Source: Oopsacas minuta
Taxonomy: Eukaryota > Animalia > Porifera
Assembly (NCBI GenBank): GCA_024704765.1
Contig: JAKMXF010000303.1
Span: forward strand, 329,897 to 393,896
Length of the DNA: 64,000 bases
Reading direction: 5' to 3'
Position 1 is the first letter of the stretch; each line of letters starts with the position of its first letter. The translations under genes were made by a program, and so were the position numbers. Below are positions 3,515 to 26,658 of the stretch, one piece after another. The notes under the pieces were generated by a model. The model was not told the origin of the DNA and made no database searches. It saw only the letters and a list, made by a program, of their open reading frames with translations.

Positions 3515-15003
<11,489 letters not shown>

Positions 15004-15699
15004 GGCGCTATCTCTCTCGATTGTAAACGGTTAAATGTCGGATTTTCAGTCTGTTCGAATAGATTCAGTATATATTCATTCCCTTATTGATCCAGGAAAA
15101 GTTCTAAGAGGATTTGTGCTTTAGTTGAGAATATATGATTACTATAAAATGATAATAAATGAAAATATAAAAATTATAAAATAATTTATTAATTATCAAA
15201 TTCCCTATTTTATATTTTCAAATAAATTCTACAAAAGTTGTTCTATCTCTCTCCCGTATGACATATAAGTATAGCATACTACTCGTTACATTCGAAATAA
15301 CAGATTCCAATGAAAAACTAACCTTTTAGTGTCCTTCAATACAAGTAGGAATCTTCATAATATAATACTGCATAGTAGTCCACTGTAATGGATGAATAGA
15401 GCTGATACTCAATACAACTCGACAGAGGCAATATATTAATATTGTTAATCTTTGTCTAGTATACTGACTCTACTATATACTATAGTTGGAGGCATATTGA
15501 GTTACTTGATACTGAGCTTATAAGTTTTACTAGAACATTTGTACTGAATAGTAGATACTACTAATACTTGAGTACATTCAAGAAATTGATCAACTGTATA
15601 CGCAGACTTAAATATCGCTCTTCTACACGAATAGATGTCCATTTAGATCTTACACTGATAGAAAAATAAAACATAGAAACGTAGGAGAACCTCTCCAAG
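15004..15699. promoter_or_regulatory. Putative bidirectional promoter region shared by the two collagen genes
   Basis: 696 bp between divergent ATGs (15003 minus, 15700 plus); no specific motif identified. Confidence 0.55.
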
Positions 15700-18600
15700 A
15701 TGAGTGCAATGAAGAAATTTAGGTAACTTTCTTTTATTTAAATTAATATCACTACTGAGACGTTAATGCAAAATTTAAATGTTGCATTTCCTTTGTACTC
15801 CATATTATAACCAGGGTTCTGAATTCTATTGAGAGTATTTACCAACCATTCAAATATGAAATTCTTTTCTTGCTAATATTTTGAGGAGTATAATTAACTA
15901 TGTGTGTGTACACCCTATGTGTGTTGCAAAGTGATATTACAAATATTAGTGTCTCTTTTGAATCATTTCAAAAAGTTATACCTTGATAATAGCGTTATAA
16001 ATCTTCCAAAATTATCCTCTGTTATTTGTAAACTTTGGGCTAATATGCTATGTACTTTAGAGAAGTCAGTCATGTAGTGCAAATAACTTCAAATATATTC
16101 CATTAACTAATGATATACATACTATAGTCTGCTAATTCATGAAATATAGATAAAATACATAATATTTGACGTCATAGCAAATATAGAAAATATCTTAATT
16201 CTTCAACAATTATCAATTTATCATTTTTATTCATTTTAGCACTCAAAATGTATTAATTGTGATCTTCACTATTTTCGGTGTAACCTTCGGTCAGAATCTC
16301 TTCCCAGTTTCACCAGTAAGCGGTATGTGAAATAATACAGTATATTAATTAAAATCTTGTATATTCTATTTTAACTACTTATATGAGGCCTCAGGCTAGA
16401 ACGCCTCGAGTTGCAAATATATATATATATGATGAATTCTATATTGAATTGTTCAATGTAAAACATGGCGATAATATAAACATACGAGATATTGCACCTC
16501 GAGATATCCTTTATTATCCAAATTAACGGTCCCTTTGGTACTATAGTTAGTTAAGTCATATTTACATAAGTTCATCAAAATAAACTATAAATTTACATAT
16601 GAGTATAAGAAATTGAAAATGCAATATTCGGATTCAATATACTTGACCAGACCTATATTGCCATTGAGGACAAGTCTCTACGTATTTTTTGATATTTCCA
16701 TTATTTGTTTACATTATATTCACAAAAACAACAATAAATATATATATATATGATAAACTTGAAAGTGCGAAATTCGGAATCATACTTGATTACCTCACAA
16801 ACAAACAAACAAACAAACAAATTAACAACAATCGAGATTCAATCAATATATACAAAACTAATCTCATTATTAAGTGTCTAAATAAAATAGCATCATGACA
16901 GGCATGTTTGTAGGTTAAATCGAAAATTGCTTATCTACGTCAAAATTGTATATGTTAGATTCTAAAGGACCGAGTGGAACAAGTAGCACCTACTTATTAG
17001 TAGCTGCACTAACTTTAATTTGTAATTAAATATTTTTCACACTTCAGGCTATTCGGAGATATTCCCCAGTATACTACAAGGTCAACTCCCGGAAGGAGTG
17101 ACGAGGACTAATTTGGGTTTGTGTACTTGCTGTGCCGGTTGTTTCGAAGAGAACGCATACAGTATCGATGGGAATTTGGCAAGTGTATCTGGTATAGCGG
17201 GTAGAAATTTCCCAACTAATTTCTTACTAACTGGATCAATCAATTTGAGGAATGGACTGAGAGGGCCTCTACTTACAGTCTCACAACGAGGAGCTAGTAG
17301 ATCAAACAGGTTCATCTTCACAGTAGGAGACCTCCCAACAGTCCAGTGGGGATCAAATCTATTGACATTTCCAAATGTAGATTTAGCACGAAGTGACTGG
17401 GTTGTATTCGGTTTGGAAGTAACTGGTAACAGTATCAGGCTGTGTACCCGTGACGCTGTCTCAGAATCAAGGAGTGTGAGCGGTCCGTTAAATTTTCTGA
17501 CATCCTCCAGCGATCAAACATTTGTTAATATTGCGAAAGATTCATTGACATCTCAAACAATTGATTCTGTTTCCGTGAGTTATTTCATTCTAGCACTGCA
17601 GTGTTGACTATTAACAATTTGTTCTAGTGAATCAGGTTGCAAAATGCAACTTGCAGTAGAATAATTCATTGTTGATAATAAATTGAATATCAAATTATGA
17701 TGGTAAAGTTTTACATATATAAATTTGCAGGTCGATATTGGACAGATTAGCATAATCCCAGGACAAAGTTGTGATAATCTTGGTACATATATTCAAATTG
17801 TTGATCAACCATGCGGCACTTGTCCACCAACGAATCCATTCATCTCTGCAGTACCAGTTCCGACAACTCCTGTACCAACTGCGGGCCCAACAAACGTGAG
17901 TTAGATTGACATTAACTACGAAATATTACAAGTAATTTATAAATTACGAAGATGTAACAATGTGCAGTATATACTGCATTAAAAATGATATACAGTCGAA
18001 ATCGTTGTATTTGTCCATTTGACTACATTGCTTAGACTACAACAAACCAATAGACAAAACTCGGATGATGCATATTTTAGTTATTCATATTCACACTAGA
18101 ATAGTAAAATATGCTATGCTACCATGTAAATATTTGAATGAACGAAGTCAAGAGACAACATGATCCGAACATATGGGAATCACGAATAAAACAATCTATA
18201 CAGAGGTTTGTCGACAAAAACTGATGAGATAAAAACCCGGTGTTAAAACCAGATTTCGACTGTAATCTATGTCTGTAATTCGTGTAACAATCAGTGACGT
18301 TGCGTCTTGAGCAAGTAGAGTCTAGACCCCTAAAATTATATTCGGGCAAACCCAGTAATATGAAAATATTTTATGGGACGCTTAGCTTCTGGGTTCTACT
18401 CCTAGAATTTCAAAGCTACACGACACGACGCATGATACATTATTAATATATTATAAATATATTTCTTCCCTCTATGTCAAATGGATCTACAGCTAGTGAC
18501 AAATCCTGTAAGTGCAGTTATTAATACCTGTATTCATAAAATAGTATTCAAATCTCTAGTATTTATGCAAACTAACATTATTGATATTCGCAATTAATTA

Positions 18601-21600
18601 CAATTTGTATTTAGCCATTCGTGTTGAAAGGAGATAAAGGAGAAGCAGGTGACCCCGGACGTGGAATTCCCGGACCGGACGGAGCTCCCGGAGTATCTGG
18701 ACCACCAGTAAGTTAGATATTTCCTACAGATAACTTCAGACACAATTTTATTAAATATTGACATATTAATAATCCTTAAATTTATAGGGAGGTATTGGAC
18801 TTCCTGGAGTTGCCGGAAGACCTGGATTCAATGGACAGAAGGTATGTGTACTTATGAAACTTATTATTATATAAAGAATACAGTTTTATGAATAAATAAC
18901 ATGTGTTTTTAGGGTGAATCAGGTAGAGTTGGTGAGGCAGGATCAGATGGTCCCCCGGGTCCTCCTGGATACTTTGTTGTAAGTTACACACCAAATAATA
19001 CATACAAAATACTTCATTAACAGATCTGTATAATATTGTAATAATTATTTTAATAGGCCGATAGCACTGGCCAGCTCAAAGGTCCTGGATTACAACTGAA
19101 TATTCCCTGTCAAAAGGTAATTAAATTCATAAATATTATAAATCAGATTTGATAATTATAACTGTAAATAATTAAATAAGTAAATAATGATTCGCTCTAT
19201 AGGGAGATACTGGATCAAAAGGACCAACAGGATCACAGGGATCACGTGGACCTCCAGTGAGTATTGTGTATATTTATTGTGTATGTATTTCATTAAATAA
19301 TATCTTAGCATAATTACTAAATTTATAGGGGCAATCTGGGCCGGAAGGACCTCCAGGTGAACAAGGATCCAGAGGTTTTCAGGTAAATAAACGTATATTC
19401 AATCTCTCGTATCAATTGTATTAACAGTTGTATATTGTATAGGGGTTGAGAGGATTACCCGGACAATTAGGAAACCAAGGAGATATCGGTCCACAGGTAA
19501 GCTAAATAATAAATAATTAAACAACACATAAGAGAATATTTTATAATAATACTTACTTAGGGCGAGCAAGGAAGGCAAGGAAATCCAGGTCCACCAGGTC
19601 CACCAGGAAATACTGTAAGTTGACATTACTACAGACCGTTTATTAGAATATAAATTTAGAATTAATTATAAATACATTTGATAGGGTGGACAAGGAGTAA
19701 GGGGTCGTCCTGGTGCAATGGGATCTAAAGGTCCCCCAGGTAATCCGGGAGATACGGGAACTGCAGGATCACCAGGAGAGTTTGGAGAAAAGGTATGAAA
19801 CTAGAATTTTAACAACATATGATTTGTGTAAACAGATTATAATAGTATGAATGTTTAGGGAGAAAAAGGAGAGGACGGTAATGTTGGATCCACTGGAGAA
19901 CAGGTAGGTATACTGAAATAGAAAAGTATATCCTTATTAGAATGAAATATTATTGCAACACATTTTAGGGTGAGCCAGGTCCATTAGGACCAACTGGAGC
20001 TTCAGGCTTTCAAGGAATTCGCGGACCCCCAGGACCAGCTGGACCATTTGGTGATAAGGGTGAGAAGGGGGAATTTGGACAAACAGGAGCTCCAGGACCT
20101 CCAGGAAATGGTGGAACACCAGTACGTTACAGATAAAATGTTGTGTATTTGATAATACATAATTGAATATACTAATGCTTTTGTAGGGTATATTGGGTCA
20201 ATCTGGAACAGAAGGTGATAAGGGATCAAAGGTAAGTATCAAATTGTTTGTAATTTAGAATATGATTGAATTACAAAGTTATTATCAATTCATTAATCTG
20301 GTAGGGAGACAGGGGGTCACAAGGACCAACTGGACCATCAGGAAGAGATGGAACACCTGTAAGAACAATTACATAATGAACAAATACCCACTATAGCAAT
20401 ATAATATTATATTTTCACTGTTTAGGGTGCACAAGGTGAAACTGGTCTGAAAGGAGGAAAGGGTGAGAAAGGACCCCTGGGCAGAAGTGGCCCAGTGGGA
20501 ATACGAGGACCTGAAGGAAATAAGGTAAATTAACTCCAAATGATTGTAACTTTGAAATACAACCTAATTATTTATCTTATCTTAGGGTGCTAGAGGACCA
20601 CAAGGACTCCAAGGGCCTAAGGGCGCTAAGGGTACAGAGGGGGTTGAAGGAGCCAAGGGAGATAGAGGAGAAAAAGGAACTCAGGTATGAAGTTGTATAT
20701 AAACTTTATAAATAGAATATTCTGATAATTAGAGTCTCCTGTTATTCGTACCAACTATCATGTATTCATAATTCAAATTTCAAATGCGAGTTTTGCATAG
20801 GGTATAACTGGTGAGACAGGAATACCAGGAAGAGATGGATCAACAGGACCTAGGGTAGGTTTCTACAATAGTAGTAAGACTGACTTGTGGATACATATAT
20901 GTTATAAATATACACTCTAGGGACAACCAGGTCAAACTGGACCTATTGGTTCACCTGGCACAGCAGGAAGAGATGTAAGTTTAATATCGCGATTTATGAA
21001 TATAAGAGTAAGAAATTAGGACATATGTACATTTATGCAAATAATCTCATATACAGGGACCACCTGGTGAGCAGGGTTATACTGGTAATCCTGGAGCCAA
21101 GGGAGGAAGAGGACAGATTGGTATCAGAGGACCACAGGGTCCTAAAGGAGATCGTGGTTTCAAGGGACCTCCTGGTAGACCTGGTGACTCAGGACCAACG
21201 GGATCATTGGTGAGAATGAACACGAGTATAATTACTACAAACTTGATATTGTTATTGACATATACTTATATTATCTTATAGGGAGAGAGAGGTCTCAGAG
21301 GTAATGAGGGTGCTCAAGGAGCACAAGGTTTAAAGGTATAGTACTATGCACTGCTTATAGTATGAAGCATTTTATTCGTATATATTCTGTAGGGAGACAA
21401 AGGATTGCAAGGACCTATAGGACGACAAGGAGAATCTGTAAGTAATCATATCCTGTAACAGAATAGGTTATATTGTAGTGTCAATGATGCGTTCTATAGG
21501 GACCTAAAGGTGTACCTGGATTTACAGGAGAGATGGGAGCTTTTGGACAGAGCGGTGATACCGGTGAGGATGGTCCTAAAGGAGGAGTAGGAGAGAGAGG

Positions 21601-24600
21601 AGAAGTTGTAAGTAACTATATTAACCACATATAATATATATTATATTTGGGATCCTTTGTGACAACACTATTAATATTGTTTATTAATGTATAGGGTAGA
21701 GCTGGTCTCGATGGACAACAAGGAACAACAGGTCAAAAAGGTGACAAGGTAAGCTCTCTTTTATTATTTACTGCATCAGTTCTTACGTAATATTTAATAT
21801 TACATTTATAATACCTAGGGTACTAAAGGACAATCAGGTGCCACGGGTATACAAGGTGCTGAAGGTAGACCAGGAGTAGTCGGTATAAATGGTATCCCCG
21901 GTGTACAGGGACTTGACGGGCTGAAGGGAGAACAAGGTCCCTTAGGACCACAGGGAGTACGAGGCCCACTTGTGAGTATTTTAGATACAATTCGCATTTC
22001 ATACATTCATGTATCAATTTTATTAAATTATTGTTAGGGCGATCAAGGACCTGTTGGAGCTCCTGGACCAAAGGGAATACAGGTGAGTATGTTAGAAAAT
22101 TTCTATACAAATACAACTGTGTACAACAGAGTTTTATTAGAAGTTTTTCATATAAATATACTCTTGATACACATATGTAATATATAATAACATTTATAAC
22201 TTAGGGAGCTACTGGGCGCGATGGAGAAACAGGGGAAACAGGACAACAAGGCCAACAGGTAAATGTGGTTGCAATCATGTATATAGTTATATGACTGCAG
22301 AATATATAACAAACTGTCATAAATCACAATAGGGAGAACGAGGAGTTTCCGGAGCTCCTGGAGAGAGAGGTGATACCGGATTAGCTGGAGTATCTGGTAC
22401 CCAGGGTACTGATGGAGGTCCTGGAGAGAGAGGATTGAAAGGAGATAAGGGACAAAAGGGAAGAGAAGGAAATCCAGGAGATGTTGGAGAGAGGGTATGT
22501 ACAAATAATAATAATAAATCAACTTTTAGAATGCATAATTATACATTTTTCTTACAAGAAATTTTTTAATAATAGCTTCACTTAAGTTTACACATATTCT
22601 AGGGTGCTGAGGGACCTGAAGGTGATCCTGGAGCGAGAGGAACTGATGGAATGCCGGTAAGTATGCTTATATTATATAGATGAAGATACAGTATTATATT
22701 TACTACATTTAGGGAGCCCCAGGTATACAAGGTTTAACTGGAGCAAATGGTCCAAGAGGAGATAACGTGAGTATAACTTATTAGAATATCAATAATTATA
22801 TATAATATACTGCACTATAATTGTTTCTATAGGGTCCTCAAGGTCCTAAAGGAGACCAGGGTGTGACAGGAGTTGATGGAACACCTGTAAGTTAATGAAT
22901 TTTATATATTAATAATATAATATAGAACATATGATTAATCTAACTTTATTCTCAGGGACTGTCTGGCATTATAGGACAATCAGGAATAGACGGATTAAGA
23001 GGAGAACAGGTAACGTTACTGTCTATTAAGTAATAATTATAATAAATATTTCTATACATTACATTCAAATTAGCCTGTGGTTATAGTGCCGGAAACGGCA
23101 GGCAGGGTAGCCACTTCCTTTAAATTAACACCGATATTATAACAAAGTATTACACAATTGTATAAACAAATATTCCAATCAATTAGGGAGAGAAAGGCTT
23201 TATGGGTGCAATAGGGCCTACTGGTCCCCCCGGAGAAAAGGTGTGTTACATCTCTATGATATATTTGATAGTCAATCTTCTCATAGGATAATACGATAGA
23301 GATTAATTTTGTAATTGTATAGGGTGCACAAGGGGCAGACGGGTTACCAGGAAATCAGGGATTAATTGGTAATAGTGGTGCTCCTGGCGCTATTGGTGCT
23401 GACGGACCCCCGGGTCCTCCAGGAGGACAGGGATTCAATGGAGATGTTGGTAGAGAAGGTGATTTAGGACAGAAAGGAGAAAAGGGAAGTCCAGGAGTTG
23501 GAGGTCCACAAGGTACGAGAGGAGAACGTGGAGAATCTGTAAGTTTAATTAAACTAACAGTAGTATTACACTAGTATATATAATTCTAGATCTCTATTGG
23601 AATAACGATTCATTGACAGAGATAATGGTTATATTGTAACTTTAGGGTAATCCAGGCGCTAAAGGTGACAATGGACAAAGAGGACCTACAGGAGCAGCAG
23701 GAGCTCCAGGTAGTTCAGGTGCACCGGGTCCAATTGGAGAGACTGGGCCACTCGGACCACCAGGACAGCCCGGCCCATCTGGATCAGATGGAGACAGGGG
23801 AGACCTAGGAGAGCCAGGAGCTAATGGACAGCCTGGAAATGACGGAGTTCCAGGAGATATCGGGCCTAAGGGTTTCAAGGGTAATACTGGACCATTTGGT
23901 AATCAGGGACCAACGGTAAGTTAACCTGAACATGAGTTAGCTAAAATATTCAAATAAAACTTCATTTAATATATTCAATATAGGGAGAACGTGGTTCAGA
24001 CGGTGATACAGGTCCTAAGGGTGACAAAGGAGCAAAGGTATGTATGAACAATAATAATTAACAAACTATCATAATACAATAAAATGAATTTGATGTAAAT
24101 GTAGGGAGCAGTAGGACCAACTGGTATTACTGGTAATGCAGGAGTTCAAGGAGATTCTGTAAGTATAATTATTACTATTTCAATACGAAGGGGTATATCC
24201 TGTTATTCAATATATGTTAATAGGGATCACAAGGACCAAAGGGAGATTCAGGATTCCCAGGTACCAAGGGAGAACAGGTAAGAGAGTAAAACCTTAACGT
24301 GTTGTAGAAAATAATTCAAAAATTAAACCTAATGTTTGTAGGGAATCTTGGGAGAACGAGGTATAGAAGGTCAACGAGGAATAGCCGGTCCACCGGTAAG
24401 TACTCAATACAAATAAAGTAGTTATTATGAGAAATATTGATGTATATGTTTACATAGGGACCTAGTGGACCTGAAGGTGATCAAGGTGTACAAGGAAATC
24501 GAGGATCAAAGGTAAGGTGTCCGAATTTAAATATGCTTCAATAATTTATTGACAATTTGATTCAATCTATGTATTTAGGGTGAAAGAGGTGACCCTGGTA

Positions 24601-26658
24601 TTGAAGGACCAGCTGGACAACCTGGAAATGACGTAAGTAGCTATAGTATAACTGGTGGATTACTCAATGGTATACTGTAGTCGGATATTAAGATTATAAC
24701 GTATTTAGGGACCACAAGGAAACCCAGGTACACCCGGTATTAACGGACCAAGAGGAGAACAAGTGAGTTATCAATTAATTGTGAAATGAGTAATAATGAA
24801 ATATACCAATTTATTATATATCGTGTAATTCAGGGACAACAAGGACCTCCTGGAGATACCGGTTTAACAGGACCACAAGGTGCAGATGGACTACAAGGAC
24901 CGCAGGTGCATATTTATCCAATTTAATCATATTACAAGTGAACAAATATAGCTGTTTTAATGACATTTATGTTTCTTATAGGGAGCTACCGGAGATAACG
25001 TAAGTAACATCGTAACCAAGAGTATTAAATGGAATATATATACGTAGATTATTTGATGGTATAAGAGGATCATTTCGAACCTAATTTGGGAAATTTAAAG
25101 ATTATTTATAACATATATTAATAGTCACAATAACTTATCTATTTCTTTAGGGCCCAGCAGGACCAAAAGGAGATCGTGGATTACAAGTAAGTATTTAATA
25201 AAAATACATACGACATTTGTTACAAATTGACGGTCTCTTTGAACAATAATTCAGTAATAAATATCAACAGAAGTTCATTATATCATGAAATAAACAATAA
25301 ATTTACATATGAGAAGCTTTACAATACGAAATTCGGATTGGATACACTTCAGACAGACAATTGAGATTTAATAATATAATAATATTTATATACTGTTATA
25401 CAATAGGGTGTAGCTGGACCACCTGGACCAAGTGGAGCATCTTCGGTAAGTATAAACTTTTATCGTTAATTTTAACTATTAATATTAAAATAAATGTACA
25501 CATTATGAAAGGAAACAAATATGAACCTATCATCCATTGATAAATATTTACAACTTACTATGATTCTAGGATCCTGGACAAACAGGCGGTAGCTCATCAA
25601 CTAAGGGAAATTTCTACGCTAGTTTGAATGTAGAAGAAGATTGCATGACAGAGTTGACAACTAATCTAGCACAAGAGGGTGCCAACCAAGTCGGTATAAT
25701 AAACCTAGTCATTGAGAGATTGGTAGTAAAGAATGGAGAGAGTAAATGCTCTGCATTCAGAAGTTGTAGAGACTTGCATACAAAGGAGAAGATAACTAAG
25801 AAAGTATGGGTTGACCCAAGCGCCTCTGCTAGCGGTATATATGCCTACAGAGCTATTTGTGATCAACAAAACGAGAACTGTACTGAAATAGTGAAATCAG
25901 AGGTAAGGAAATAGTGACAACACATTTCATATATAAAAATACTAAATAGTATAATGACCAATTAAACTCAATGGTGCATTGGTCATTATGGTGTTGATAT
26001 TTGTGTTTAGTACGCATATACTATATATGCGACACTCAATGCCAAAATGAGCGCTTTCCAAAATACTGTGAGAAACGCTGCATATATAAATAGCACTTGG
26101 TAATACCGTAGATCAGAAATTTTTCGTTAGTTTACTGTAAACCACAAAAATAGAAATAATATTCTTGATCTATAGGTGGAAGCCCTAAGGTATGTAGTAT
26201 GGAAGCTACGAACCCGCTATCATCAAAATCTGTATTTACCATAAAATTTCCATATCTATGGTATTCGCAGTTTATTGTAGCAGCATAAATACCAGTTGAA
26301 TTAATACTGTTAAGTTGTAGCATTTAAATAAAATCCCATCGTTTAGATTGAACAGACAATATACCAAGTTCAAAAGAAATTTTTGCTCCTACTATACGCT
26401 GATTCAATACAAACCTACAGCACGGAGTGTAGTAAAAACCTGGTAGCTGCAAACAAAAATTCCTTCGAAGGGCAAGTTCAAGTCCTGCAGGCCCAGAAGG
26501 TGTTTAATGTAAACACCTGTGAAGAATTGATAGCAAAAATGAAAACGTTTCAATGTAAAAATGGAATGAGAGATTTTATCATAAAATCGGAAACGAAACT
26601 TGTTCCATCTATCGATTCGTGTGTGGACTTCTCCAGCGTAAAGGAATCTTTCTGTTAA
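15700..26658 (+). CDS. Fibrillar collagen alpha chain B (multi-exon; signal peptide, TSPN/LamG, minor helix, major helix, divergent COLFI)
   Basis: Exons 15700-15722 and 16240-16322 splice to [25 protein letters not shown]; TSPN exon in ORF 17098..17607; many Gly-X-Y exons from 18.6 to 25.4 kb; COLFI motifs RSCRDL, VWVDPS, AIC...[23 protein letters not shown]; stop at 26656-26658. Confidence 0.93.
16745..16837 (-). mobile_element. 5' part of a Helitron-like element in collagen B intron 2
   Basis: Reverse complement A|TCTCGATTGTTGTT(GTTT)n then CCGAATTTCGCACTTTCAAGTTT, a module shared with 42200. Confidence 0.55.
17993..18262. mobile_element. pogo/Tc1-type MITE in a collagen B intron
   Basis: TA|CAGTCGAAATC ... 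GATTTCGACTG|TA. Confidence 0.75.
25290..25366 (-). mobile_element. Truncated Helitron-like element in a collagen B intron
   Basis: Reverse complement AAA|TCTCAATTGTCTGTC...AATCCGAATTTCG...CTCATATGTAAATTTATTG. Confidence 0.55.

Follow-up and report, generated by a model that had tools for sequence, protein, structure and literature searches.

Two anciently diverged fibrillar procollagen genes lie head-to-head across a strongly conserved spacer in the sponge Oopsacas minuta

We analysed a 64,000-nucleotide stretch of the Oopsacas minuta genome (assembly GCA_024704765.1, contig JAKMXF010000303.1, forward-strand positions 329,897 to 393,896), hereafter the window, in which two collagen genes, gene A on the minus strand and gene B on the plus strand, point away from each other across a short spacer. 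The reading that we favour, and which we consider well supported though short of certain, is that A and B are fibrillar procollagen genes of ancient divergence, arranged head-to-head and divergently transcribed from one compact, strongly conserved control region. The geometry of the locus and its conservation indicate that such a conserved, compact control region is probably shared by the two genes. An earlier note, made from the letters of this DNA, had described two complete procollagen genes diverging over 696 base pairs (bp), and that description is borne out by gene models, by RNA joints and by a DNA contig.

The start codons lie at 15003-15001 on the minus strand for gene A, where the ATG opens a signal peptide, and at 15700-15702 on the plus strand for gene B, where it opens a short first exon; between them the spacer occupies 15004-15699 (696 bp). 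Two series of Gly-X-Y exons diverge from this spacer within the AT-rich animal DNA of the window, at 5351-13372 on the minus strand and 18663-25186 on the plus strand, and the exons of both series have clean tag/GG.../gtaag borders and are separated by introns of about 70 nucleotides (nt). Using local scripts, we assembled both gene models from the window sequence, and searches were run with single exons or database proteins, not with joined spliced proteins. The coding region of gene A, a fibrillar procollagen, spans 3515-15003 in 63 coding exons (1609 residues), and that of gene B, a fibrillar-type procollagen, spans 15700-26658 in 51 coding exons (1594 residues). Both genes are complete, and every intron is GT-AG. 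To these models we compared contigs from four public runs of one sample, which were placed on positions 13200-19000. Three of the four runs are DNA-like, and one DNA contig covers 13200-16788, spacer included, unbroken and with zero differences. The remaining run, X4, is RNA-seq-like, and its contig depth reaches thousands on the exons of gene A and gene B alike. Its joints agree with the 5' introns of both models, at 13230/13318, 13371/13435, 13474/13551, 13915/13974 and 14501/14892 for gene A and at 15722/16240, 16322/17048 and 18707/18788 for gene B. In addition, an mRNA fragment from a related species (P0001, 412 residues, 69% identical) shows the same joins as the first nine coding exons of gene A, a 9-nt micro-exon included. 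This micro-exon, at 13691-13699 on the minus strand, is backed by a loose RNA end as well as by P0001. A 15-nt micro-exon is predicted in gene B at 18493-18507 on the plus strand, in surroundings that are 82% identical to DNA of another assembly in our comparison set (L002).

The head-to-head arrangement is kept in other sponges. The comparison set consisted of long contigs of five other assemblies (metagenome assemblies L002, L004, L005, L006 and L007), which were reached through exon-sized orthologue open reading frames and which, judging from their sequences, we take to be hexactinellids. The head of gene A is 60-74% identical to that of the window in L002, L004, L005 and L006, and 78% identical over a partial exon in L007. 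Orthologues of A and B stand head-to-head in all five, which makes six genomes with the window; pairing in related species, which the earlier note had named as a check on its proposal, was found in each of the five assemblies. The distance from ATG to ATG is 654 bp in L002, 693 bp in L004, 627 bp in L005 and 699 bp in L006, compared with 696 bp in the window. An assembly artefact is ruled out as the source of the arrangement, as six assemblies concur and one DNA contig spans the spacer.

The two predicted proteins have the same order of parts, namely a signal peptide, a globular head of about 240 residues, a minor triple helix, a short non-helical linker, a major triple helix and a Cys-rich C-propeptide. 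The minor helix of gene A (13169-13589, minus strand) comprises 3 triplets, a break and 17 triplets, and that of gene B (18615-18978, plus strand) comprises 3 triplets, a break and 18 triplets; an N-propeptide minor helix followed by a non-helical telopeptide, which is a mark of fibrillar collagens, is present in both. The major helix of gene A (5196-12845, minus strand) contains 339 triplets, and 32 of its 48 exons are of 54 bp; that of gene B (19203-25445, plus strand) contains 339 uninterrupted triplets, and 22 of its 40 exons are of 54 bp. The other helix exons have the classical sizes of 45, 99 and 108 bp or are fusions of those, and helix exons are all in phase 0 in both genes, as is typical of fibrillar collagen genes. 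A major helix of 339 triplets is also found in the orthologues from L007 (gene B) and L006 (gene A), despite differing exon fusions. The two proteins of the window have 11% identity at the X and Y positions of the helix, 22% in the head and 19% in the C-propeptide. Because 30 of the 40 helix exon boundaries of gene B fall at the same triplet number in gene A while X/Y identity is 11%, we regard the pair as old, and the sequences point to A and B as old paralogues that keep one ancestral layout. The same 11% identity rules out a recent inverted duplication.

Two irregularities were seen in the helices. At triplet 325 of gene A (5509-5517, minus strand), Ala stands in place of Gly (GNP-AVS-GAR), and Gly is found there in L004 and L006; judged from these sequences, the Ala would reflect a substitution specific to this species, an allele or an error of assembly. 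The gene A orthologue of L004 comes out 11 triplets short at about 13470-13800 of its contig with a simple exon finder, probably because the border of one 99-bp exon is non-canonical or its sequence contains an error.

When the DNA of the whole locus was compared with L002, the spacer region gave the best-scoring match (window 14886-15740, 76% identity over 855 bp), and the long introns gave no alignment. Within the spacer lies an ultraconserved non-coding block of 276 bp (15310-15585), which shows 88-95% pairwise identity between species. The corresponding identity is 44-62% at four-fold degenerate sites, for which 37% is expected at saturation, about 53% in orthologous short introns, and 80-87% at codon positions 1 and 2 of the helix exons. 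In a five-genome alignment, 80-93% of the block columns are invariant in most 30-nt bins, and all six genomes agree at every position of a 50-nt run (15462-15511); in the AT-rich, A-proximal part of the spacer (15100-15220), only 10-40% of columns are invariant. On these comparisons, the spacer is under strong purifying selection, and the block is more conserved than coding sequence. The block is single-copy in the window, and an exact search for it in JGI metagenomes returned zero matches. Three copies of the heptamer ATAGTAG/CTACTAT, in both orientations, lie at 15372, 15470 and 15548, within 180 bp of the block and in invariant columns; this motif was picked post hoc, and its count across the window is not enriched.

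The X4 contigs place an exon of gene A within this spacer. A non-coding first exon, which forms a long 5' leader (15324-15579, minus strand), is joined to an acceptor at 15141, and the ends of the intervening intron (15142-15322, joint 15141/15323) read CT..AC, which corresponds to GT..AG on the minus strand. The contigs on the leader exon cover 15323-15481 and 15452-15579. Exon 2 of gene A (14895-15141, minus strand) then supplies a 138-nt 5' untranslated region (5'UTR) and the signal peptide, with the ATG at 15003. The limits of the ultraconserved block coincide with the leader exon, and the end of that exon at 15579 is about 120 bp from the ATG of gene B. We conclude that at least some A transcripts start at approximately 15579, a position given by a contig end, and that cis-splicing joins them to the acceptor at 15141. 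A TATA-like element of the TAAATATCGCTCTT type lies between the putative A and B starts (15610-15622) and is invariant in six genomes; the end of the A leader contig and an invariant CCATTT at 15639 are each about 30 nt away from it. The earlier note had proposed a shared bidirectional promoter. The part of that proposal that stands is a compact, conserved control region, which is indicated by geometry, by conservation and by the proximity of the A leader to the gene B ATG, and from these sequence features we infer promoter function.

According to the mechanism that we propose, 15580-15699, with its TATA-like element, would be a core promoter read both ways, and the block would act mainly at the level of DNA, as a module densely bound by factors, through which the output of A and that of B would be coupled. 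Most A transcripts would lose the leader, which is rich in upstream ATGs, through spliced-leader trans-splicing at 15141 or through a proximal start. With the two genes coupled, the collagen matrix of the sponge would receive two types of chain at a fixed ratio, and the end product would be A/B heterotrimers or, as likely, two kinds of trimer in one fibril.

Several observations weigh against this interpretation. The summed contig depth of the leader exon is about 6% of that of gene A exon 2. The X4 contigs carry no strand or end information, such that 15579 is a contig end and an A start there is putative. The main A start may instead sit nearer to the A ATG, in the poorly conserved, AT-rich segment at 15100-15220. 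Glass sponges trans-splice a spliced leader of about 37 nt, which hides true starts (Francis et al., 2023). Furthermore, co-regulation at this locus rests on one RNA library and on a paper whose gene identifiers were not matched here, and the barely similar C-propeptides of A and B weaken the rationale of co-assembly.

Part of this evidence concerns how the A transcript matures. Because the depth of the leader exon is so low relative to exon 2, and because the leader holds several short upstream open reading frames, we consider the leader-bearing transcript to be a minor mature form. Good splice acceptors are present near both 5' ends, at 15141 for gene A and at 15699 for gene B, and because glass sponges trans-splice a leader, both are candidate sites for its addition; the comparison with the reads listed no loose ends at either site. 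It may be that most transcripts take the spliced leader at 15141, and 15142-15579 would then be an outron; alternatively, gene A may have a second, proximal start. The leader exon itself is not a spliced-leader RNA gene, which is ruled out by the length of the spliced exon (at least 159-256 nt) and its single occurrence in the window. The 5'UTR of a related mRNA (L001) gave no alignment to the window.

The low depth of the leader exon would also fit two independent promoters placed side by side, in which an AT-rich proximal promoter immediately upstream of 15141 mostly drives gene A, and a separate one near 15610 drives gene B. The block would then serve only one gene, as an upstream enhancer of B or as the A leader, and the neighbourhood would persist by ancestry in compact genomes and not through selection for coupling. 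Minus-strand TATA-like runs at about 15165-15180 and the poor conservation of the A-proximal half of the spacer are consistent with this arrangement. However, the orientation is kept in six genomes with a nearly constant spacer length while synonymous sites are near saturation, the long A transcript begins beside the putative core promoter of B, and a spliced leader at 15141 may explain the depth gap without a second promoter. We therefore regard independent promoters as unlikely, and continue to favour a control region that is shared.

The block could instead be a functional RNA element and not a DNA control module, either as a 5' leader of A that regulates translation, by analogy with the 5' stem-loop of vertebrate collagen mRNAs that is bound by LARP6, or as a separate non-coding RNA. 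Its coincidence with a transcribed exon (15310-15585 for the block, 15324-15579 for the exon) and its conservation above that of coding sequence are compatible with such a role. In contrast, a scan of the spacer against Rfam returned no family, only a chance-level small nucleolar RNA row; the folding energy of the block in RNAfold is no better than that of shuffled sequences (z -0.09); and RNAalifold found no useful covariation. The leader, with its several short upstream open reading frames, belongs to an isoform that is minor by depth, and the block is absent from the B mRNA. An RNA function of the block is thus, in our estimate, improbable, and somewhat more so than independent promoters.

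A stronger form of the shared control region is that the block is the core of a bidirectional module that locks A and B into fixed-ratio co-expression; the pair would then be a fibrillar equivalent of the paired collagen IV genes, and would have arisen or survived where collagen IV has been lost. We advance this version tentatively, as a possibility that falls below even odds. If it is true, few non-coding elements reported from a non-bilaterian animal would be conserved as strongly as the block. The choice and balance of fibrillar chains in invertebrates is an open question, and a conserved divergent pair with an ultraconserved spacer provides a mechanism, concrete and open to test, by which two chains would be supplied in stoichiometric amounts. 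Sponge chains lack the chain-selection sequence of vertebrates, and differential expression has been suggested as one solution (Exposito et al., PMC2852846). With its sharp bounds, the block is in addition a rare candidate for the study of deep non-coding conservation and promoter architecture in sponges, in which trans-splicing obscures starts.

The known system that most resembles the locus is that of the collagen IV pairs (COL4A1/COL4A2 and equivalents), which are transcribed head-to-head from a shared bidirectional promoter (PMC3308698). As in those pairs, two head-to-head collagen paralogues are separated by a spacer of less than 1 kb, the arrangement is kept across species, and the high contig depth of both A and B in one RNA library is compatible with joint control. 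Unlike collagen IV, which forms networks and bears NC1/C4, A and B are of fibrillar type, with a 339-triplet helix, 54-bp exons and COLFI, and the ultraconserved block of 276 bp in their spacer is at the same time a non-coding exon. Moreover, the chains of collagen IV pairs co-assemble, whereas co-assembly of A and B is hypothetical. Glass sponges are reported to be without collagen IV (PMC10280926). Full-text literature searches found no head-to-head or bidirectional fibrillar collagen genes, and reviews of fibrillar collagens describe no such linkage.

The earlier note had supposed that the locus may be undescribed, and this is correct only in part. Two tandem pairs of collagen genes show co-upregulation in the growing osculum (the growth zone) of Aphrocallistes vastus and occur in Oopsacas minuta as well (Francis et al., 2023). 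Like A and B, those are paired and very highly expressed hexactinellid collagen genes, and the A/B locus is probably one of them. The published text differs in giving no orientation, domain type, promoter or conservation analysis. What is new here is the divergent orientation, the shared spacer, the ultraconserved 276-bp block and an arrangement kept in six genomes.

We also considered whether A and B assemble obligatorily into one heterotrimer, as do the alpha1 and alpha2 chains of collagen IV, with the pairing setting chain stoichiometry. Their helices are equal and in register, with 339 triplets each and 30 boundaries in common, both genes have high contig depth in one library, and the pairing is conserved. 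The earlier note had reasoned that equal major helices would support co-assembly; the equality was confirmed by the triplet count, but it says little about co-assembly, as a helix of about 338 triplets is generic to fibrillar collagens (PMC2852846). The chain-selecting C-propeptides are a further point against a heterotrimer, as described next, and so is the barely recognisable COLFI domain of gene B.

The C-telopeptide and COLFI C-propeptide of gene A (3515-4933, minus strand) comprise 239 residues in seven exons, and Pfam recognises COLFI (PF01410) on two exon pieces (E 1.4e-5 and 4.5e-4) that occupy adjacent profile positions, 19-78. Both pieces score under the gathering score because each exon holds a fraction of the domain. 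The remaining C-propeptide exons of gene A show the COLFI Cys pattern by eye, and the C-propeptide exons are 62-89% identical in L004 and L006. The C-terminal, Cys-rich propeptide of gene B (25570-26658, plus strand, about 214 residues) is a very divergent, COLFI-like sequence. Its window exons gave no sequence match in Pfam or the PDB, where the rows were at chance level, although two of the three orthologue C-propeptides match COLFI weakly (best E 0.004, profile positions 9-73). A hidden exon in this propeptide is excluded because only 58 nt separate its exons 50 and 51 in L007, where they are directly spliced. Between A and B, the similarity of the C-propeptides amounts to z 2.3, with 12 of 500 shuffles scoring equally well, and hhalign of the two as single sequences found no match. 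With 19% identity and so low a z score, the heterotrimer put forward in the earlier note is not supported; separate trimers in one fibril fit equally well. We rate obligate heterotrimers as rather unlikely, although less so than independent promoters, and the shared control region that we favour would serve either end product. By eye, the C-propeptide of A keeps the Cys at the vertebrate C2 position but not the one at C3, and B is without both; judged from the sequences, neither the A nor the B chain would follow the pattern in which vertebrate procollagens form interchain disulfides.

The fibrillar collagens that A and B most resemble in layout are those of the TSPN-bearing B and C clades, which have a helix of about 338 triplets (PMC2852846). 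The procollagens of these clades (V/XI and XXIV/XXVII, for which Exposito et al. described homologues in sponges and cnidarians) resemble A and B in the position of a TSPN-type N-propeptide, the minor helix, the major helix of about 338 triplets, COLFI (barely recognisable in B) and exons of 54, 45, 99 and 108 bp (PMC2852846). They differ in that the heads of A and B escape Pfam and that the C-propeptide of B is extremely divergent.

The head of gene A is an N-terminal globular domain encoded by two exons (13776-14504, minus strand), which protein-atlas features and an AlphaFold model assign to a beta-sandwich of the LamG/TSPN/pentraxin-like kind. The corresponding domain of gene B, also in two exons (17048-17895, plus strand), is placed by protein-atlas features. 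These language-model features lie near Laminin_G_3 clusters for A (score 0.96) and near ConA-like/Laminin_G_3 clusters for B (0.95-0.96). Pfam gave zero matches for the N-terminal exons of A or B or for the fragment P0001, and profile and single-sequence searches of the PDB with the N-domain returned chance-level rows only. For the main head exon of gene A, AlphaFold with an 11-sequence alignment predicted a beta-sandwich with a mean predicted local distance difference test score (pLDDT) of 68, and of 70-92 at residues 57-176. In VIA-align, this model gave Z scores of 8.8 to pentraxin, 8.4 to NEL, 8.2 to the N-domain of thrombospondin-1, 8.2 to LG domains and 8.1 to collagen IX NC4. Because ConA-like, LamG, TSPN and pentraxin folds score alike, the TSPN label applies at the level of the fold superfamily only; the modelled fold and its position are consistent with TSPN, which is not singled out from related folds. 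A single-sequence AlphaFold model of the gene B head had a pLDDT of 29 and no usable fold. The earlier note had read TSPN, minor helix, major helix and COLFI in both genes. Both helices and the COLFI of gene A stand, TSPN is retained at the superfamily level, and the COLFI of gene B is weak and detected in orthologues only. A 42% identical N-domain exon from another run (P0003) lies on a 936-bp contig, and relatives of it were not found on longer contigs.

Minor features were also seen in the DNA of the locus. An A>G difference at 17147 appears in DNA-like and RNA-like runs of one sample alike, and is therefore probably an allelic variant and not the result of editing. Three long introns of gene A contain insertions (8445-8989, 7639-8117 and 6833-6991): one insertion lies between (ATT)n/(AAT)n runs, another combines a GC-rich, repeat-like core with a (CAAA)n/(CA)n tail, and the remaining one holds a short inverted repeat of the miniature inverted-repeat transposable element type. 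A further gene A intron, at 9044-9197, is mostly a perfect (ATT) microsatellite of about 35 units. In L007, a gene for a 1454-residue URGCP/GBP-type GTPase lies at 15135-19499 on the minus strand, approximately 4.6 kb past the end of the B orthologue.

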